Under the pieces are notes generated by a model. It did no database searches, was not told the DNA's origin, and saw only the letters and a program-made list of their open reading frames with translations. Shown here in pieces: positions 9,074 through 57,082 of a DNA stretch of 57,082 bases. Position 1 is the stretch's first letter, and each line of letters starts with the position of its first letter. Source of the stretch: Parasitella parasitica NRRL 2501. Taxonomy: Eukaryota; Fungi; Mucoromycota. The stretch covers positions 1 through 57,082 of the forward strand of contig MU619290.1 of the NCBI GenBank assembly GCA_025201805.1. The letters run 5' to 3'. A program made the position numbers and the translations under genes.

Positions 9074-12000
9074 ATGCACTCAACCATGGCTTCGTTTGCT
9101 ACAGACCAGCCACAACCTTATTTTTACCCGCCTACAATACCCGAGTATCAAAGATCAAATCCTAATTCCCGAAGAGCATCAGCTGCAACAAACCATTCAT
9201 CCAGCAGATCGTCCAGATCAATGAGAGACAGACGTCGAAGTTCCGGAGCCGTGTCAACCCATTCACAGCAAAAGCCCAAGAAATGCATTGGAGATTATGT
9301 AGTCGGAAAAACGCTAGGAAAAGGCGCTTCAGGTACTATACAGTAGAAATTAAATCCAGGCACATTTTCACGATTTCTTAATTATTTTACATATTGCAAT
9401 TAGGCCGAGTTAAATTAGGTGTTCACCGACACACAGGGGAGCAAGTTGCTATAAAAATTATCAGTAAAGCTCATTTAGCTGCGAACCCTGCTATTGAAAA
9501 AGCTGTTCGAAGAGAAATTGCCATCATGAAGTTGATCCACCATCCAAATGTCATGTCATTGATTGATGTGATTGACGATCCAGCTTCTTCAGACTTGTAA
9601 GTTAAAATTTTTTTTTGTAATATATACTCCCTCCAAAAATTGCCATTCCCCTATAAAATTTCCCGTTTGCCATGAACTTCCCCCCCCCCCCTCCTCCCCC
9701 TCCTTATGTATATAATATAATGCAGCTCCTATTTATTACACTTATACTTAATGAATTTTTCTGGCAAATAGATATCTTATATTAGAATACGTCGAAGGTG
9801 GCGAACTATTTGAGTACCTTGTTAGCAAAGGAAGATTAGGTGAAGCAGAAGCAAGACATCACTTTCAACAGATCATCTTGGGTTTGGACTATTGTCACCA
9901 TCATTTGATTTGTCATCGTGATTTGAAGCCTGAAAACTTGCTCTTGAACTCTAGAAACAGCATCAAAATTGCTGATTTCGGTATGGCATCACTCCAGCCT
10001 CTAGGATCCATGCTTGAGACCAGTTGCGGGTATGCATTAAGACATCGACTACACAAACATGAAAGAAACTGACAGCGTTTTTATAGTTCTCCTCATTATG
10101 CTAGTCCTGAAATTGTAGCTGGTATGCCATACAATGGATCCTCTTGCGATATTTGGTCTTGCGGTGTCATTCTTTACGCTCTGTTGACCGGACACCTTCC
10201 ATTTGATGACGAGAACATTCGCCAGCTACTGAAAAAAGTCAAATCAGGCAAATATATCATGCCAGACAATATATCCCGATCGGCACAAGACCTTATTCGA
10301 CGTATCCTTGTCGTCGACCCAGCAAAGCGACTCAACATGCAGCAAATCATGTCACATCCATGGTTCCGGGAAACAGAGCCTATGAATGTCTCTGTGCTGC
10401 CTGTCCCCCCTACCGAAAAGGAAATTGGCCAGCCTGTGAGTGATGCTTCTGAAATTGATGACCGTATCTTGGAGACAATCAAATTCTTATGGGGAGAGTC
10501 AAACAATCAAGCAGTGATTAATGCACTCGTTCAAAAAGAGTAAGATATCTTTAAATAGTTTTTTTTTCTTGCTGGCACACGAGCTAATGTATTGAATAGA
10601 CATAATATGCAGAAAGTAGTATATGTACTTTTACAACAGCATGCTGAAAGGTATTGGCAAGCAGATCACGATGATGAAACAGATGATGACACAGAAGATG
10701 CATATTCAGGTAAAGATACATATCGAATGCCCCCTTCTACATTTACTAACAAACAAAAACAGATGCTCCTCGACGTCGCTACAGAACGATCGGCCACAGA
10801 ACAGAACGAGACAGAAGATGTCTGTCGATGGTGGACGCCAATAGTAACGTTATAAAGTCAGGGTCTGCAACTACCGCAAGAAAGGGCTCTGTTCCTGTGG
10901 TTGGCAACCGTCCTGTTGCGCCTTGGATGCCGTCTGACTCTTTGCCAGCGCAGCAATCCAAAGCCGACGCAGCCCGTCGTTACTCTGCTGCCACCATTCG
11001 ATCTGAGCGTACACCTACATTTGCAGTAGATGATCTGCCTGCTAGCCCTGCAGCTCCCATCGATGAGAAGAAGGCTACTAAGATGAAGAAGAGCGAAACG
11101 TTCTACGCTAGATTCGTCAAAAATGTCCTGTCACCCTCCCGCAGACAGAGCAAAGATGCAAGGTAAGTTGCACAGCACACATGTACCAAGTCTATTTTTT
11201 TCTAATCATTTTCCATTTATGCAGGAGCAGCAACAATACTGATATGCCTCCTACTGCATCGCAACAAGGCAATAGCACTACTACAAACACAACACCTTCG
11301 AGCCCAACTACTCCCACCCCTACTTCAAAGCCTATTGCGGCAACGCTTGTGGGCACCTTAAGACGCAAGAACCCCTTTAACCGTACGCCCATCAACACTA
11401 CTGATTTTGCCATTTCCACAACGTCCATGAAGGAGCCCACCTCGCCCACCGTTCCTCCCAAGTCGACACTTCGGCCTACAAGCAACATTCTGCAACGCAA
11501 CAAAGTCGATATCTCAACCGAGGACACCGAGGAAGAAAGCATCCTCTTCCAGCAGCAGCAGAAAGAAAACCGCAAATCAAACAAATCGGCTACTCTCAGT
11601 GCCAAGCGCCTTTCTCTTCGCATTCCAAACGCCTTCAAAAACGAATCCACAGTCAATGCTTCGTCTACAAAGAAGTTTGGCTTCACTCTTGGCTCCAATT
11701 CTCGCAAGCAAAGAAAGCAGCTGGACCTGTCACTCTTTAAAGCAGAACAACAAGCCCTACAAAAAGAAAGGGCCAATGCAGTCAATAGCAGCAAAAAGAC
11801 CCTGGTCAACGACTCGAGTCTTGTACCTCCTCCTGCTTTATCTGACGGCAGCACATTGAGCACCAGCAGCAGTACATGCTCTAGCACTCACAGCAGCTAC
11901 TACCACACACCAACATCTCCTATGCAAAAAGTACCTCCTACCTTCAAGTCTGTTATGAATAAGCAATCCAATCAAAATGTGTTTGCTGCTGGCAACCCTC

Positions 12001-12987: not shown

Positions 12988-14834
12988 CTACGATTGGCTG
13001 TTCCTGGCATGGATAATCTCTATATCAGGGACACCTAACTCTGCCTATATGTAGATGCTTGTTAGACGTAACTGGTATAATCAATCCATTTTCTTCTTTT
13101 TTTTTTATATACCCTATGCATACTGTTATTGGAATCGTGTCCAATAGCAACAGATAGCTCTCTTACTGAGATACTACTGGGGTCATTGTTGGTATTACTT
13201 CTGTCACTGGCACATACAAAATAGCTGCAGCTCTACATGACATGTGCAACGTGATGAGTTACAACTACATAACCTGATAAACATAAACTGCTTACTTCCG
13301 ACCATGAAGACCGACATTCCCAGCAGAAACTGAATCCACACAACGTACAGTCTACCTTGTTACAACCTTCATCTCGATTGATCATAATTGAGCAACTGGG
13401 ACATTTTCGACTATTTTCCAACTTCCATTTCAATGTCTTTATGTGGTCTGCAGCACCAGAGCCTGTTTCTACGCTTTGGCTGATGAGTTGCTGCATATTT
13501 TCCTCGCATGTTGCTTCACCAGGATGGCTATCTTCCCCACATTGTAAGCACATTGACTTTTGACATGTTGGACTATATGCGTAAAATGGCGAAAATGCAA
13601 AATGTTTTAGAAACAGCAATGGCAATGAGCCCAATACCTGACATTACCAACTCATATTTGAAAACATAGATATATGGTCAAACTGCAATCTTCTCCATGT
13701 ATCAGGTCGCAACTCTAACTGCAGTATATTGAGTGAAATGGCTTTCGCACTTTCTGACTGATCTGTTAGTTGGCATATACGCAGCAACTGCAAGATCAAC
13801 TGATAATGGATATCAACAATCGTAGAGTTTCTCCATTCCAGCTTTTCAAAAAGTCGTACAAAGTGGTGCTGATGAACCATGTTTTCTATCAAGGCCAGCA
13901 TTTGCTTGTTATCTTTGCATTGTGAAATCGTTGTGTTGAAGAAATCCTGTATCATCGCAGCTATTGCTTTGGACTGACTGCATCAATACGAGTATGAGTA
14001 TATATTTATATACACACACACATACACATGTTCTGTATATTTGGATACGTGCCTTTTTTCGGGTCGTCTTTGAGAATCACATGGAGCCAACTCTGTTTCA
14101 CAATGAGAGCAGCACCTTGAAAAACTTCGGAACGGCTGGTTGAATTTGTTGTAGAGTTCCGTTGTCGATGCAGGCACAAATTTGGCCCATTCGGATTGAG
14201 GAATATACACTCTGCATACCGGGCATCTGATCTTTGTTACGTTGAGACCCCAGCTAGACTGGACTACATCTGTAACATATCTGTTGTTATTTTGTTAGCG
14301 TCATGTTTACATGTCGGTATGTACGTGCATATTGAATTACCGCTGGAAACATTCTACGCAAAACTGATCTCTGCAGTATTCCAGACACATGTCTAGCTTT
14401 GAATCAAAGCATATTGAGCACCTCTCTAAATATATATTCAGATCATTCTGGTCTTGATCTGGATCATCATCGTCGTTGAGATCAAATAAAGAGGGTTGTC
14501 GCTGCTGCTGCTGCTGCTGTTCGCTGCTCCCCATAAAGAAAATATTGATAATGTAGAGGAGTCTGATATCTCTGGGAACCACTACTAGTTTCACCAAAAA
14601 TCGTGATATTGATATGCAGCATTGTGTCAATACATAGACTGGGAATAATATCAGAAATAATAGCAGCAGTGCGACGGGATGCTTTGCCCATGATTTGATA
14701 GCGGACACAGGAGTTTGAATGAAGAGGCGATACAAGTACTGCAGCAAAAACATGCTCAAGAGACGGAATAGATAGGCGGAATCGTTCATTTTGTCATATT
14801 GCCGCTGTTGCTGCCTTTGGCGTGAGGTATTCAT
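12988..14834 (-). CDS. RBR (RING-IBR-RING)-type E3 ubiquitin ligase with N-terminal hydrophobic segment
   Basis: CSICFD...CRDQFCVEC (RING1), CLQCGEDSH, CPSCSIMINRDEGCNKVDCTLCGFSFCWEC (RING2); last exon AELGVPD...SQS* ends at 12988. Confidence 0.85.
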
Positions 14835-17163: not shown

Positions 17164-18924
17164 CTAATCACTGTCGCCTTCATCATCGTTATTTTCCTCG
17201 TCATTTTCATCATTAACGTCTTCCTGGTCTTCATCATCGTCGTCATCTTCATCATCGTCGTCATTTTCATCATCGTCGTCATCTTCATTATCGTTGACCT
17301 CGTCTTCCAATTCATCTTCTTCTACATTGTCCCAGACAACCTTGCTGGTACCATATTCTTTTTGTTTTACTGTGGTATTACTTATACAATCGTCAATACA
17401 TTTTCGTTTTTTTCCTCTACAAGCTTGCTTTTTTATCGCTTCACATATCGCCTACAAAAGTATTGTCAGCAATATTCAAAACAATTTTTTTTTTATACTT
17501 ACAACGAGATCCAAAAGACCATTTGCGACTTCAATTGATTCTTTAGCAAAGTTATTCAGGTTTGAGGGAAAAGTTATTGTTTTTACCTTTTTGGTAATAT
17601 AAAAACTATTAGATTTTAAAAATACGATACATAAGTGCATTTCAAAACCCATAGCAATAAGGTAAGGAATGTAGACACAGTCTTTTTCTTGATTGATTGC
17701 GTTCTTATTTATCACCGAGTTAAGCAAGGCTTTTGAAGCTACAACAGTCTTTCTTTTATCTTTGAAGTATTTGGGTGTTGAACATTCTTTCGCGACTTCA
17801 CCATAGCCATGGTCTTGAAGTTTAGAGTTGTTGATTGTTATTAATCTGAGGTCCATTTTCATTTTTACCCCTAACGAAAGTAAAGATCCAGGGATCGTAT
17901 CACCCCTAAAAAAAAGAGTTCTTGAATGAGAACATAGGTCGCGTAAAATGCAACAAATTAGTATATTACTAATGGGGGATGATGGAGGAATTTTTGAAGG
18001 CCTTTTCAACCAATGGCCCCCAGAACTTGACAACATAATCACATTCAGAGTACGACTTGATAAGTGAGCTCTCAAAAAGGTAAGCTTCTTCTAGATGCTT
18101 TTTAATCCTATTCTCGTAATAAAGTCTGTACATACTTGCAGTCAGCCAAATCATTTAGATACTTACAGAAACTTAAGGACTGAGACGGAAGTAGTAGTGT
18201 CTCTGTCTTTCTTTGCAATGGTTTTTAGTTGATTAAGAGATAATTGTAGTCCCCTATTTGTTGTTTTAATGCTCTAAAAAAGGATGAGTTTATTGAACAA
18301 ATAGTTACTTTCAGATTTTTACCTTGACATGCTTCATTACGTGGTCAAGCTCTTTTTCGTCGAACTCAGGACCCTTAGAGGATTCAACAATAGTATTTCT
18401 TAAGTTTGGTGACAACAGCATGAGGGGCGAGCCAGGGCTTGTATCTGATATGTCAAGTATATGATTTCTTGATAGTCTTCAAGTGTACGTGTTAGAATAA
18501 AAAGTATTTTTTTTAAAAAAAAAACGTTACGTTTTGTAATATAGAGTTTTGTAATTTGTAGGCTTTGTGTGACTTATTGAATTAAACATAGACTTCACAT
18601 CGTCAAACTGAAGAGGCGCGTCAGCGAGAGTAATTAGTGTTTAATCCGTTAGTACCTACGTGCTTTGGCTTCTTCTCCGTTTTCTTCTGCTTGCTCTTTA
18701 AAATATAGATGAGAAACTAGGTCGTCAGTTCAAAAAGCTGTTAAAAGGTTTACCTTTAATGCTTTTCTCTACTTGAAATTTGCCAATTAGTTTTTTGTAA
18801 CGATAAAATTAATGATAAATAACTATACTTGTTCTGAAATTGCCTTCTCTTGAGCCTCTGCATAAAAGAGCTCTCTGTTTTTCGCGTTCTTGATAAGTTT
18901 TTTATTTAACTTATTGGTGGACAT
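17164..18924 (-). pseudogene. PD-(D/E)xK nuclease-like gene #1 (multi-exon, acidic tail), with an apparent in-frame TAG
   Basis: SECDYVVKFWGPL...H[W>*]GDT...KMDLRLI...GYGEVAK...KYFKDKRK; canonical introns; D/E-rich tail ends at TAG 17164; splicing 17969/17906 creates TA|G. Confidence 0.65.
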
Positions 18925-19155: not shown

Positions 19156-19682
19156 CAATATTAGATTGAACTTGTGGCAAGAAAAGCGACATCAACGCCT
19201 CTTGTTGCAAGCAGTAGATCTAGCTACTTGTGTTTGATATTGTTGTGTGAGTGTTTTGGTGTGATCTGCAGTCAGTAGCAGTTATTGGGTTGATGTACCG
19301 TGCTGCCAAACATCGCTAGACATTGAACGCTGTCTCTTTTGACGGGTTGATTGTAGGTTCGCATCATAGTTTTCCTATCGGAATACAAAGGTAAGAAGAA
19401 ACCAAGTTTATATTCAGATATATTTATTGACTAGTTGCACACTGTCTTGAACACATTTTGTAGTGGGCATATGCATAAATACACGCAGCAATATCAGACT
19501 GAACTTGTGGCAAGAAAAGCGACATCAACGCCTCTTGTTGCAAGCAGTAGATCTAGCTACTTGTGTTTGATATTGTTGTGTGAGTGTCTTGGTGTGATCT
19601 GCAGTCAGTAGCAGTTATTGGGTTGATGTACCGTGCTGCCAAACATCGCTAGACATTGAACGCTGTCTCTTTTGACGGGTTG
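19156..19682. repeat. Two ~194-bp direct repeats (19156-19349, 19489-19682), period 333 bp, unique ~139-bp spacer
   Basis: Near-identical copies CAATAT(T/C)AGA(T/C)TGAACTTGTGG...GACGGGTTG with about 3 substitutions. Confidence 0.95.
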
Positions 19683-41168: not shown

Positions 41169-42794
41169 CTAGAATAATCGTCGACGGGCACGCTGTACAG
41201 CAGGATTATTTTTGTCTAATTTGCGTTTTTTGTCCCTGATAATAATTGGTGTGTGCATTGAGACAATATTGTCCAAAAGACGAATGGCAGGTTGAGGACA
41301 ATTTCTTAATTTCACTGCAGATGAATGAACGATGACTTGTAACTTTTGAAACAAAGGAAATATCGGTAATAGCTGATGCATTTGGTAGCAATCACCAGGA
41401 AAATTGACACTTTTAAACAATACAACACGGTACAATCCATCAAATACATGATCCATACAATATACATGACAGCGATTTCCCTTCATGAGAATACCAGAAA
41501 CGATAACACCAGAATAACCATCATTATGTAGCGCTTTCATGGAGTCTTTCAGCTCTCTACATAACTTGACTAATTCATTTACATGCTTGGTTTTGTTTGG
41601 TTTTGCTTCTAAAGATAACAGTATATGGTCGGATTTGCTGGAAACAACCGTGAAATCAGCTCTTTTACCATAGTTCTTGAGTGATGGATCCAATCTGGTA
41701 AATCTCTTGGAATAATCAGAAATCATGGCATCGCAACCAATTGATTTGGTCAATGGACTGTTTGGAAAGTAGGATCTGAAAAAGGCGTCGATTGTATCTC
41801 GGACAAGAGTTGCTTCATTTAATTGATCGGTAGAATAATCTGTACAATAGATATTCGTAACATCATATAAAACTCTACAAACAGAAGTATCATCCGGATA
41901 CTTATTCTCGTACTCTTTGATATATTTCTGGATTGCAGTGATATTGATATTTCTTGTAGCAAGATCGTTTGCAAACATGATAACTAGCTCTTCTTGAGAT
42001 CTCTTCATACAGGCACTTTTAAATGCATCAACTTGGTCAATATCATTAAAGATACGTGGCACTTCTTCATAATCCACAATATCAGTGTTTACAAATCCAT
42101 TATCAAGTATCATTATTCCATCCAAAGCCAGCTGTTCGTGATCATTCAGATCTTGCAAATCTTCAGCTTTACTAATAGCAGCATCCCGATAATCAAAGAA
42201 TGCTTGTGAAACATCATAATTATTCACCATCCATCTGATAGAGTTCTCCTTGAGCTTGTATTGATAAGTTTGTCCATCATGGACTAGGTAATGTTTTGCT
42301 ACACCTTGATTTTCATCATTTGAGCTGCTCGGCGATGGTGTCGAATCGCGGCTTCGATACTCAGATCCTTCACTCTCTTCATTGCCAGACGATTCAGCTG
42401 CAAAAACATTCTCGTAATTTTGTACCTGTCTCATTGTCTGTTGGATCTCTGCGGCTTTCAATTTTGATCTTGTGAGTTTCATTGATTTAGCATTCCAATA
42501 ATCGATAAATGCTTTTTGTTCAAAGATCTAATAAGCACTTTTAGAGCAAGCCTTAAATACTTGATAAACTTTTTTTCATACCCCAAAGTTATCCTTGATA
42601 ATAGCGTGAGCAAACGCTCTCGCCTTTTTTGATGATTCTTTTTTATCTTTAGTGTCTTTGATACCCTCTACTAAAAGCTTGAAATTGGCAACTGCAGAAT
42701 GTTTAGTTGGACAACCTTGGATATCCAAAAACTTGATTATGTCAAACAACTGATATGATGCATGTTCAGAGAAGTATTCAAAAAGCTCTCCCAT
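41169..42794 (-). CDS. PD-(D/E)xK nuclease-like gene #2 (two exons, apparently intact)
   Basis: Exon 1 MGELFEYF...; intron ~42527-42580; exon 2 LNEATLV...GKRADFTVV...ILLSLEAK...KLCRELKD (D...ExK core). Confidence 0.72.
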
Positions 42795-52080: not shown

Positions 52081-52639
52081 AATTTAAGGGAACTGGATGA
52101 ATCTAAAAGTGGAATGCAGATCAAATAGTGAATGTATTTCGCAGACAAGACTAATTTACAATGATAATCTACTTGACAGGGTACGATGTAAAGTTATATA
52201 ACAAGGGCTACACGTCTCTGATCTGATAATGTCTTAACCTTTATCCTGGTGCTCAGATCTGTGTTAATTACAGGAATAACCTTCTTGATTCGAAACAGAT
52301 CCTTTATTTTCCAGTTTACGCAAGCGTATCACATCACATCATTGGAGAATCTTCAATTTTCAGTTGAAGTACACTGCCATGATTTCCTGTCTATAATCAT
52401 GGCAAATCAAAGACTTGCATTAGAAACTATCTACTTGAGTCCTACTCACTTTAACTTACGATGCTAAATTTATTGATGAGTGATTCACATTCAAATTGAC
52501 AATTAGCTGATTAAAATAGACATGTCCTGCTCTGACTGCTACTTTGTTAAAATCTCGTTTGACAATTTACTGCCAAACAAGAACTTTTGTGTTCACAGAT
52601 GGATTTACTATGTTAACTAATTTACTATAGCTGGGGCAC

Positions 52640-53206
52640 CACATCATGACTTATATTTGGATTCTGGACATACACGCCCTGGATTGTCGATGGATCAGAA
52701 ATATCTGAAAGAAGGATATGTTGGCGACTCCACAGTCGACAACAACCTGGTCGTAAAATGGATCACTTGCTTGAAACTAGACACAGTAATGAAGACATTG
52801 GTTGTGGCGAGTGTGCTTTGGCTGGTGCTATCAGCGGGAAAGCAGCCAATGTCAAGTTCTAGTTTAGTCATGACATCCAATTAGCCAACGCAATCTGTAT
52901 CAGCCATGACACAACGAAGAGGTAAATCTGCAGTTACGACTAGTGAATCTTCCAGATTATTTGGGTTTATATGAAATGTCGAAACAGTTAATTCCAAAGC
53001 AAATATCAGTTTCGGGTCAATTTGAACAAGCAGCAGCAATCACATCAGGGTTTGTCAGTAGAGATGTAGAGGGATCATCAATGACTATAGGTGAGGATAC
53101 AGATACAGTGGAGGCTCCAGGCTTGTTGATGCGTTCTCGCTACCCAATCAACAAGTACGATCATGCCAGAGCAGTTTTGAGTCAACTTCAATACAAAGCA
53201 AAATAA
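52640..53206 (+). pseudogene. Decayed PD-(D/E)xK nuclease-like gene #4
   Basis: A frame not in the ORF track reads SERR...PGRKMDHLL...EDIGCGECA...KF*; disrupted by stops and frameshifts. Confidence 0.5.
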
Positions 53207-53306
53207 AATATAGTATATTCGTTTTTATTATTAAGGACAATTGCTGTTCATTGATATTATTGCTAAGCTTGTGCACTCTTCTTGGATTACCAGCTGCCTT
53301 TAGTGC

Positions 53307-54152
53307 AAAACACCGATGCTCAGGCCTAAGGCCAAGAGAACACACATTCCCTTGGTCTCTGCGAGAGAACCCGACCGCTGAATCGCCAAACAAGAATCAC
53401 CTTGTCGGTCTAACTCGATGAGTTACATCAGTCCACCTTTACAAGAAAGGTACTACTTGATAAGCAGAACAGGGCTGGCGTCTTGGACCGCAGACATGTA
53501 GAATGAAGAAATCAAGAGAATACATTAAACAAAGTAAAATAAGGGTTAGGGCATCACTATATTGATAATTTCCTATACTTGGCTGGAATCGCACATACCT
53601 TATCTTGATTTGATTCATCATATAAACTTTCTGCAGAATCAAAACACCAATGCTCAGGCCTAAGGCCAAGAGAACACACATTCCCTTGGTCTCTGCGAGA
53701 GAACCCGACCGCTGAATCGCCAAACAAGAATCACCTTGTCGGTCTAACTCGATGAGTTACATCAGTCCACCTTTACAAGAAAGGTACTACTTGATAAGCA
53801 GAACAGGGCTGGCGTCTTGGACCGCAGACATGTAGAATGAAGAAATCAAGAGAATACATTAAACAAAGTAAAATAAGGGTTAGGGCATCACTATATTGAT
53901 AATTTCCTATACTTGGCTGGAATCGCACATACCTTATCTTGATTTGATTCATCATATAAACTTTCTGCAGAATCAAAACACCAATGCTCAGGCCTAAGGC
54001 CAAGAGAACACACATTCCCTTGGTCTCTGCGAGAGAACCCGACCGCTGAATCGCCAAACAAGAATCACCTTGTCGGTCTAACTCGATGAGTTACATCAGT
54101 CCACCTTTACAAGAAAGGTACTACTTGATAAGCAGAACAGGGCTGGCGTCTT
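53307..54152. repeat. Tandem array, period 334 bp: three 178-bp hairpin-rich modules (53307-53484, 53641-53818, 53975-54152) and two 156-bp spacers
   Basis: AAAACACC(G/A)ATGCTCAGGCC...GGCTGGCGTCTT occurs three times; the two spacers appear identical. Confidence 0.97.
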
Positions 54153-54346
54153 AAAACGCAGAGAGTATGAGATGAGGAAAGAGAAAGAAAAAGAGAGGAC
54201 ATTATTAAAATGATTTAGCCGTTAGTGCACAGTCCCAGGTCCAGAATGAGGTCATCATTGGATGCCCAATAGCTCGCGTAGTTGATAAAAATTTCACGCG
54301 CAAATAATGGTGCCACCAAACCTTTCTTTGCTTTTTTTTATCAGCA

Positions 54347-56236
54347 ATGACAACTAAACGACATTTAAATGATGCACAGTCTTCCAAAAGCAAACGGCAT
54401 CAGGATTCGGCACCATCTCCTATATTCAATTACATGAAAAATCATCATACGTTCCAAACTTTTGATACAAAAGAGTTTCTTTGCTTGTTGAACTGTGACA
54501 CTCGCGAATCAGCTAAATTGGAAACTCAAAACCAGCTCGAAAGCATCCTGCAAGTCAAGAAAGTGAAGGATGACATCAGGTTATTTGTCGCGAATCTACT
54601 CAATGGTGATATGAAATTTCTATCGGATCCAAGGGCTGAAATTTACTGGATGGAGAAGAGAAATGCGTTCGAGACAGTGACTAATGCACACAAGCAATTG
54701 GGGGTATACAATGCAGTGTCGTCGTCTGTTTCAACTCAGGCACTGAAGGTAAATCACAATTGATCATTCCACCACAATGGTCCTTTTAACATCTTCATTT
54801 CCATTAGGAATCACAGAACAATGAGCCTGCTGCTGCGGTTAATACACCTCCAAGACGTGCTTCTCCACCTCTCTTTGAAAACATCTGGACCATTTGGAGC
54901 GATTTGCTGAATGTTATATTAACTGACGACCACGAAGATCAAGACATTCATGAGTTTAGGTATGAGATGGGCCTAGATTTTTTTTTTGTATTGGACTAAC
55001 ATGTTCGAATATAATAGCTTGGAGTACTTGGGTATCATAACACTCGGCAATCATATTGGTAACAGGCAATCAAGAGAAATGTATCCAAAGGAGCTGGTAG
55101 CAGAGACAAACAAGATGATGAAGCCTCCGGTCGTGGACATCTTTCACAAGTACGAAGCGTTTTATTCCCCACTATTTGATGCTCTGGTATGTCACCCTGC
55201 AATTACACTTTGAATATTAGCCAACTTGATTATGTAAGTAGGTCACTTCACTAGATGCTTGCCATACATTGCTTCTCAAGAATGCTCTAAGAGTCAAAAA
55301 CACTCGGGATCCCGCTCTGCAGTTTGGCTTTGATTGCTTCGTTATCTTGTAAGTGCATAACAATTTGTATTCCCTGTTTGGCCGTCTAACTTTCTCTTGT
55401 TGTGCACAGTGTCACTCAGGTCATCAAATACAAAAATCTCCTCTCCAAGCAAGAAGCTATATTCAACTATCGAGTCATGTTTCCAATGTTTGATGCTGTT
55501 GTTTCATGCCTACCCCATTGCGTATTCTATCCAGGCGAAACTAGACTGCAAGCAATCAACAACGAGTTACTGCGCTTGGGTCTCTCAACAAAAAGCTACT
55601 ATAATGCTGATGGCATTGTGTTGGATAATGCTTCTGGGTTCGAGCTGTGTTTGCTAGAGACGTCTGGGCCGTATGGACTGATGGATGAAGGAAGAGAAAC
55701 AACAGATCACATCAAGGCTGCATATGGGTTATTGTCAATGCTTCATACCGTTGCTCACAAGTTCATTCATGCCGATATTGAAGTTTTCAAGAAGCTCAAA
55801 GTCTGCTTTGTCCACGCCCATCAGAACCAAGTTCGTCTCTGGACCTTTAGTTTGGTCGGTCGTCACTTATACGCATTGACTAGAGTTGACAGCGCCATCA
55901 TCCCAACCTGTTACTCTGATACGTTTAAGGATGACTTCAAGCACTTCAGCCATCTGTTCTGGAGAATAAAGGTTTGCGACACCGAGATAATGATGTGCAT
56001 ATAGAATACGTACCTGACCTTTTCACACTTAGATGCTGACTGAGATTGCAAATGACTCGCTGAAGGAAATTGAAAGATCTCATGAAGAAGCTCGTGCTGC
56101 TGCCTCTGTCGATGTGCTACCTAGACTTGATGACTTTCTGATTGATGGTGTTGAAGTCAAGCTCTCCTCTCGTGTCACAAATGTTGAAGACATCTTCGTT
56201 TCCAGCTCGCCCGTGTTGCCCGACTCTTCTTTATAA
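54347..56236 (+). CDS. PD-(D/E)xK nuclease-like gene #3 (multi-exon)
   Basis: QEAIFNYRVMFP...FYPGE.RL...YNADGIV...FELCLLETSG...DHIKAAYG; canonical introns link ORFs 54347, 54986, 55402 and 56033. Confidence 0.72.
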
Positions 56237-56991
56237 AAAAAAACATGCATGAATATCCCCCTCTTCTCATACCATCTTATCCATTCTCTTTATGTATTGT
56301 ATTCAAAAAAAAAAAAAAAAGCAATTGTACATTTGTCCATCATCCAAAGTAAATATATAGATATCATTCAGTATAAATTTAGCAATCAAGCAAACGATCA
56401 GGAAAGCCAGAAATGATTTTAGGCTCAAATATAACTGATGTATTGTTATCCAACTCATTGAATTGAATGTGCTCTAAATACAGTCATATTGGCGCCAAAT
56501 GTTCCTTTATTTATGAAAGCATTTTGGCTGCCTTTATGTAATATGTAAGAGTAAGAGAAAGAAATGTATGTTCATCTGCGTTTTATTTAATAATAATGGA
56601 ATGCTAATATAGAGCAAACGACTCTCAAAATAAGGAAATCGTGTGCATGGTTGCTACAAAGAAGTACAAAGAGCCCTCCATCATTTCTGCAGTAAAAGGG
56701 GTTTAAGGAATACTGTTAAAATCCTTCTTTATTGAAAAATAATAGGATAATGTGCAATAAAATGTATATTCTACGTCTCTATTTAACATTAGATCTATGA
56801 TGGCATGACGGAATAAAGTACGTAATGGACGTTCCCTTTACAAAATGCACTACGCTGAGGTCACATCTTGAAATTTTCTCTTTTAAGCAAATTTGGGAAA
56901 CCAGCTCATTGACATTGATCTCAACCAACTCAATTTCTTAATGTCCTAGTCGAGCAAAGCACGCTCTACAACTTGGACTATAAATTCAATA

Positions 56992-57082
56992 TACAGTGCC
57001 TCCGGTGCCAATTTGCGCTTTTGAAAATTAGCTCGCGCAAATAAAAATCTCAATTGGCGTAAATCTGTAGGCCCAATTCGCG
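56992..57082 (+). mobile_element. Left end of another TIR element related to the 40.4/43.4-kb ends (truncated by window)
   Basis: TA|CAGTGCCTCC...AATTAGCTCG...ATCTCAATTGGCG parallels TA|CAGTGTCTCC...AATTAGCTCG...ATCTCAATTGGCG at 40361-40426. Confidence 0.7.

Follow-up and report, generated by a model that had tools for sequence, protein, structure and literature searches.

Introduction

In the type III toxin-antitoxin systems (ToxIN), direct repeats lie immediately upstream of a nuclease gene and on the same strand, in a mobile element, and it is the sense strand of the repeat units that folds. The ToxI units are about 36 nt long, and ToxN is an endoribonuclease. A structured non-coding segment beside a nuclease or recombinase gene in a transposon is also found as the bridge RNA of IS110 and as the omega RNAs of TnpB and Fanzor, and Fanzor genes ride in fungal Tc1/mariner-type elements. 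Tandem repeats are further known as internal minisatellites of DNA transposons, as retrozymes and other hammerhead-bearing repeats, and as CRISPR arrays, in which short repeats (about 23-50 nt) alternate with unique spacers. At the DNA level, iterons occur upstream of plasmid rep genes and subterminal repeats in transposons.

Here, a stretch of 57,082 nucleotides from Parasitella parasitica NRRL 2501 (contig MU619290.1, positions 1 to 57,082; hereafter the window) was analysed, which contains a 334-bp tandem array. The layout is like that of ToxIN: 195 bp separate the end of the array from the ATG of a six-exon gene for a nuclease-like protein, the two share a mobile element, and the fold signal is on the strand of the gene. 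The locus differs from ToxIN in its 334-bp units, its eukaryotic host, the introns and the restriction-endonuclease fold predicted for the protein, and it is known here from sequence and a structural model. The protein could not be assigned to the ToxN/AbiQ-type endoribonucleases, having no Pfam match and a model with a restriction-endonuclease fold. The repeated module recalls the bridge and omega RNAs in being structured, non-coding and about 180 nt long and in adjoining a nuclease-like gene in a transposon, but the protein belongs neither with RuvC/TnpB nor with the IS110 recombinases, and the module is tandemly repeated and located away from the element end. An unsystematic look revealed no complementarity of the module to the element ends. 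With the internal minisatellites of DNA transposons the locus shares head-to-tail copies in a TA-flanked element and a module number that varies from 1 to 3 between genomes, whereas the strand-specific fold and the recurrence of arrays, at the same place, before genes remotely related to the cargo gene set it apart. Retrozymes resemble it in their tandem units of a few hundred bases and their good fold, and differ in their ribozyme motif, LTRs and dispersed families; in CRISPR arrays, unlike here, the repeated block is far shorter than 178-206 nt and the spacers are not identical. No description of the gene family or of the cassette was found in the literature. A preliminary description made from the letters of the window had recognised the array and its fold, both of which hold, and had missed the adjoining gene and the mobile element.

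Results

Layout of the tandem array

TRF reported one long-period array for the 57-kb window, at 53306-54152 (period 334, 2.5 copies, 99% matches, score 1687). By self-BLAST the copies started at 53306, 53640 and 53974. A single base distinguished copy 1 from copy 2, and copy 3 matched both over its first ~178-206 nt only; the layout is therefore module-spacer-module-spacer-module (Table 1), beginning and ending on a module as the preliminary description had it. Its statement that the module is richer in GC than the spacer was likewise borne out (0.49 versus 0.34).

Table 1. Features of the window at the array and its neighbouring gene, and tandem arrays upstream of relatives of the gene. Positions are those of the window.
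Feature	Position	Strand	Period or length	Remarks
Mobile element with array and nuclease-like gene	52608-56989	+	4.38 kb	TA at 52606-52607 and 56990-56991
Module copy 1	53307-53484	+	178 nt	Multi-hairpin domain with a long-range closing helix
Spacer 1	53485-53640	+	156 nt	AT-rich; without significant fold
Module copy 2	53641-53818	+		One mismatch to copy 1
Spacer 2	53819-53974	+		Identical to spacer 1
Module copy 3	53975-54152	+		Identity to copies 1 and 2 stops 2 nt past the closing helix
Unique stretch from array to start codon	54153-54346	+	194 bp	Presumed promoter and leader
Six-exon gene, PD-(D/E)xK-fold protein (predicted)	54347-56236	+		From tblastn of public model P0152 and splice sites
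Exons of the nuclease-like gene	54347-54748, 54808-54959, 55018-55186, 55242-55348, 55410-55971, 56033-56236	+		
Separate Tc1-type element, left inverted repeat (TA, then CAGTGCC...)	56992-57082	+		Identical to L056:7197-7287, inverted at L056:13391-13481
Array, Sporodiniella umbellata			307 bp	3.8 copies, 99%
Array, L072			235 bp	1.9 copies
Array, L073			288 bp	2 copies; two ~140-nt cores 98-99% identical, flanks diverged
Array, P. parasitica contig C91 (G000)			277 bp	Two or more diverged copies with 82-88% identity; masked in part
Array, P. parasitica contig C123 (G000)			about 120-140 bp	About 3.6 copies, 71% matches

No second locus with the unit was seen. BLASTN and a covariance model found no 334-bp unit elsewhere in the 32.8-Mb genome, where the covariance model of the module (R1) hit only its own three copies. 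With the unit as query, BLASTN showed no similarity to 14 paralogue loci and the window, and an exact-pattern scan of JGI metagenomes with a 22-mer of the module gave no match.

A diverged version of the spacer start had been proposed for the sequence after copy 3. An alignment by MAFFT hinted at an old spacer copy there or before copy 1, but the shuffle tests were negative: local z was 2.4 and 3.1, the best shuffles outscoring the observed alignments, and global z did not exceed 2.6. As the similarity is not significant against shuffles, the idea of a duplicated promoter was dropped.

An imperfect inverted repeat of ~35 nt (54160-54194 and 56260-56291) brackets the gene, with one arm just after the last module and the other directly behind the stop codon, and a GAGATGAGG-like motif also follows the last module of the L072 array. 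The stretch before the ATG (about 54270-54310) has the motifs AGCTCGCG and CGCGCAAATAA in common with the Tc1-type repeat. A second array in the window, at 19156-19682, is unrelated in sequence and has a period of 333 bp versus 334 bp; this nearly shared period corresponds to about two nucleosome repeats.

The same array in other assemblies

The genome of Mucor circinelloides (L066) contained an equivalent array of ~2.6 copies on a contig of 4.9 Mb, at 99% identity and with a few private substitutions, and the last copy was present also in a second M. circinelloides assembly (L067). M. lusitanicus CBS 277.49 had a degraded copy with one module and one spacer. P. parasitica CBS 412.66 had a single module, beyond which lay other sequence and a stretch of N. 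The module number thus ranged from 1 to 3 across genomes, as expected of a real tandem repeat. Among the near-identical copies, the share of variable columns was about 5% in the module versus 4.5% in the spacer.

That the array is a repeat collapsed or expanded during assembly is suggested by the near-identity of its copies and by nothing beyond that. The equal copy number at 99% identity in the independent M. circinelloides contig, where the copies have substitutions of their own, and the recurrence of the last copy in L067 speak against an artefact, the probability of which we regard as negligible. The concern that the identical units might be an assembly duplication, raised with the preliminary description, is thereby answered.

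Predicted RNA fold of the module

On the + strand the module folded at -52.2 kcal/mol (z -3.32), and none of 200 dinucleotide shuffles was as good, in agreement with the better-than-shuffled fold anticipated from the letters alone; on the - strand, z was -2.35 and 4 of 200 shuffles were as good. The entire 334-nt unit was less special (z -2.0 and -1.0). When the 4.4-kb element was scanned in sliding windows, the + strand extremes were the module windows (z -3.3 and -3.1, compared with a mean of 0.05 and an sd of 1.4 over 51 windows), and the identical windows on the - strand were ordinary (z -0.4 and -0.8).

All hairpins listed previously are in the sequence, and all but one are part of the + strand minimum-free-energy fold, the exception being TCTC-TGCGA-GAGA, whose place is taken by a long-range helix. 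A pseudoknot between CGCCA (53384) and TGGCG (53476) had also been suggested. Both strings exist, yet TGGCG is already taken up by the closing helix, as part of its 3' strand, and the pairing with CGCCA would therefore compete with this helix and add no pseudoknot. The block that is repeated three times coincides with the fold closed by this terminal helix of 10 pairs; since 10 terminal pairs are matched by about 5% of background windows, the coincidence favours an RNA only weakly.

Eight module copies from four assemblies and three species were compared for substitutions. Nine columns varied, six of them in predicted pairs. Five of these six substitutions leave a G-U pair on the + strand and would read as C-A mismatches on the - strand, and one breaks a terminal pair. 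The result (p about 0.1) is suggestive of pairing on the + strand. No compensatory (double) substitution was seen among the eight copies, because they are 96-100% identical.

Rfam gave no match at gathering threshold in the whole 57-kb window, and cmscan with Rfam 15 over 53100-54400, on both strands and at E<=10, found no ribozyme and no relevant family. Weak C/D-box-like matches (AUGAUGA) on the - strand of the spacers, at 53595-53629 and 53929-53963, reached 18-19 bits versus cut-offs of 39-50 and are probably due to chance. A tRNA scan found none. The public Logan contigs carrying the last exon were all genomic and unspliced, and the first-exon ORF had no record when looked up in public contigs.

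The neighbouring gene

A shorter public model of the nuclease-like gene is available for P. parasitica (KAI8641595.1). Exon 5 served as the query of the homologue search, and the public gene models P0155 and P0152 were used for full-length work. The protein has no Pfam match. The exon 5 search retrieved 424 representatives from a library of 1.84 billion proteins, and the nearest clusters in the protein atlas were mostly from Mucoromycota. Residues D315, E331, D347 and K350 were invariant in 34 homologues.

The AlphaFold2 model had a pLDDT of 80 overall and above 90 over residues 200-460. By VIA-align it matched the nuclease domain of DrdV (Z 10.3, rmsd 2.8, 143 aligned), BpuSI (Z 9.0), TT1808 (Z 7.8) and EcoRI (Z 7.3), and a PD-(D/E)xK fold, with the alpha/beta core of restriction endonucleases, is therefore confidently predicted. 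Foldseek E-values for the model were weak (0.03-1). In the place of the classical ExK lysine, after the invariant D315 and E331, a Ser is found here; the lysine of the putative catalytic site might come from the following helix, with its invariant D347-x-x-K350.

For residues 153-440 of the P0155 model, the top structural matches were to a mammalian mitoribosome large-subunit protein (Z about 11, 215-220 residues aligned), ranking above the restriction enzymes. This likeness may reflect a shared nuclease-derived fold.

A variant of the gene without about 880 bp, relative to 54512-55390 of the window, was present in several public contigs (L060, L064 and L065), including a JGI metagenome. The ~880-bp gap falls between two imperfect 36-bp direct repeats, and the shorter variant seems to be a widespread deletion derivative.

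A TA-flanked mobile element shared with Mucor

The array and the gene are located in an element that matched L066:8256-12638 of M. circinelloides at 99.0% over 4391 columns (52609-56992 of the window), at a different locus. Three independent insertions showed the left junction, TA|CT(GT)ATGTTAAC, and two showed the right junction, AAATTCAA|TA, with flanks that differed in every genome. The TA adjoining the ends at these junctions is the target-site duplication of Tc1/mariner-type transposons. The two ends showed an imperfect resemblance of about 20 bp only, short of the terminal inverted repeats of Tc1/mariner elements. No transposase was recognisable in the element, in which the PD-(D/E)xK-fold gene alone was analysed; the left arm also has two short ORFs (52657-52884 and 52943-53206). 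One end of the separate Tc1-type element in Table 1 directly abuts the element at 56992. In P. parasitica CBS 412.66, most of the cassette is found between the inverted repeats of this Tc1-type element (L056:7197-7334 and 13391-13481).

Orthologues of the host genes on either side of the M. circinelloides insertion were located on P. parasitica contig C16, with a nucleotide identity of 76-82%. The flanks are 176 bp apart on C16 (C16:243909-244085) versus 5.4 kb in Mucor, hence the orthologous site is empty in P. parasitica. Given an element identity of 99% against this background, the 4.4-kb element probably moved recently between Parasitella and Mucor by horizontal transfer, which would fit the habit of Parasitella of fusing with Mucor-type hosts.

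Arrays upstream of related genes

Six of the eight family genes inspected, this locus included, had tandem arrays on the sense side, no more than about 1.2 kb upstream (Table 1); the count leaves out contig C31, where the upstream sequence is N, and includes the partly masked C91. The two other intact relatives, L074 and P. parasitica contig C59 (G000), had no array. Just upstream of the two closest paralogues, where arrays would be, there are runs of N (L036:7131-7715 and L037:4620-5444).

The relatives with upstream arrays share only 25-50% protein identity, and no sequence similarity was detected among the arrays themselves, all pairwise local alignments of the units staying at or below z 2.5 against shuffles. 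Alignment of the module with the C91 units by MAFFT was unconvincing. A motif that by eye appeared common to C91, CGTCTTGGA, had 6 matches in the genome versus 2 for the reversed control and is therefore not a family marker.

The core window of L073 folded better in sense (z -5.3) than in antisense (z -1.5), and a sense window of the Sporodiniella array reached z -3.2. At the L072 and C91 arrays the sense-strand fold was not significant, and for array 1 of the window the antisense strand folded better.

The cassette of Sporodiniella umbellata is located between perfect 533-bp inverted repeats (L071:5466-5998 and 9148-9680), which include the 3' end of the gene. About 7 kb away lies a second Sporodiniella array with a period of 287 bp (L071:17072-18406), which adjoins no family gene.

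Two other cassettes in the window, with genes at 17476-18154 and 41169-42482, were also noted as candidate combinations of a module with a nuclease. The family HMM detected neither protein, and by hhalign the D...E motifs of both line up at E 0.015 and 0.11 only; judged by sequence, they would at best be remote relatives. Their modules shared no sequence and were, as whole modules, no better than shuffles.

Discussion

A sense-strand structured RNA or leader module, functionally tied to the mobile nuclease-like gene, is the reading that we tentatively prefer, at somewhat less than even confidence. It is favoured because no other window of the element folds as stably as those of the module, and this on the strand of the gene only; because five of the six pair substitutions keep G-U on the + strand; and because the repeated block coincides with a closed fold. 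It draws further on the arrays upstream of six of the eight family genes, on the L073 cores that are kept amid diverged flanks together with the sense folds of L073 and Sporodiniella, and on a neighbour with a confidently predicted PD-(D/E)xK fold and invariant acidic and lysine residues. Counting against it are the absence of an Rfam family and of compensatory changes, the similar substitution rates of module and spacer, the L072 and C91 arrays without a sense fold, the antisense preference of array 1 and the lack of arrays at L074 and C59. As far as position goes, the data favour an association of the module with the nuclease gene.

The steps by which such a module might work can be depicted as follows. 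We infer that the module is transcribed in the direction of the gene, and it would then act as a folded non-coding RNA or a structured leader tied to the nuclease gene, as its regulator, antidote or partner. Through unequal crossing-over between modules, the array would gain or lose copies (1 to 3) while these stayed identical. The more specific version, in which unit-length structured RNAs would either serve the PD-(D/E)xK nuclease as its partner or guide or counter it as an RNA antidote, is doubtful.

The array could instead be a neutral minisatellite within the transposon, generated by slippage, by gap repair after excision or by unequal crossing-over, without function and with a fold that arises by chance from a GC-richer segment. 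A copy number of 1 to 3 among genomes is what any minisatellite would show, and units that are 99-100% identical are therefore either young or homogenised; module and spacer diverge at an equal rate, the arrays of the relatives have no common sequence and two of them no special fold, and the 287-bp Sporodiniella array even stands away from a family gene. Against neutrality speak the recurrence of arrays in a matching position and orientation before the gene in six of eight relatives whose proteins are only 25-50% identical, the strand-specific fold signal in three arrays and the conservation of the L073 cores between diverged flanks. We consider a functionless minisatellite a serious but rather unlikely explanation. 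Still less probable, in our estimation, are regulatory repeats at the level of DNA, that is, short palindromic sites bound by host factors or by the encoded protein itself, which would tune transcription or mark the element. At 195 bp upstream of the ATG the array occupies promoter territory, the module holds several short perfect palindromes that could form on either strand, and the arrays of some relatives fold equally well or better in antisense; yet the fold signal here is confined to the strand of the gene, the substitutions are of a kind that tolerates G-U, and the arrays of the relatives have no motif in common.

The preliminary description had likened the array to CRISPR-like or retrozyme arrays, of which the latter would give rise to self-cleaving or circular RNA. 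Beyond the tandem layout and the good fold nothing points to either. No hammerhead, twister, HDV, hairpin or other ribozyme matched on either strand at E<=10, and the unit has no LTR-like ends and was met only in its own array in the 32.8-Mb genome; a CRISPR-like array is contradicted by two identical spacers at a period of 334 bp. Both likenesses are close to refuted and can be given very little credence.

Should the modules prove to be functional RNAs linked to the nuclease, they would constitute a eukaryotic counterpart of the bacterial pairs of repeat RNA and nuclease, and a new type of transposon cargo in early-diverging fungi, alongside Fanzor. If they act as antidote, partner or guide, the element would be a eukaryotic selfish module of RNA plus nuclease, residing in TA-flanked transposons and crossing between a mycoparasite and its hosts. 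Regardless of any RNA function, a Mucoromycota family with a predicted restriction-endonuclease fold (424 representatives, no Pfam) repeatedly has tandem arrays upstream of its genes. Also independent of such a function, the 99% identity of the element between P. parasitica and M. circinelloides, versus 76-82% for the neighbouring host genes, is direct sequence evidence of a probable recent horizontal transfer between a fusion parasite and the genus of its hosts.
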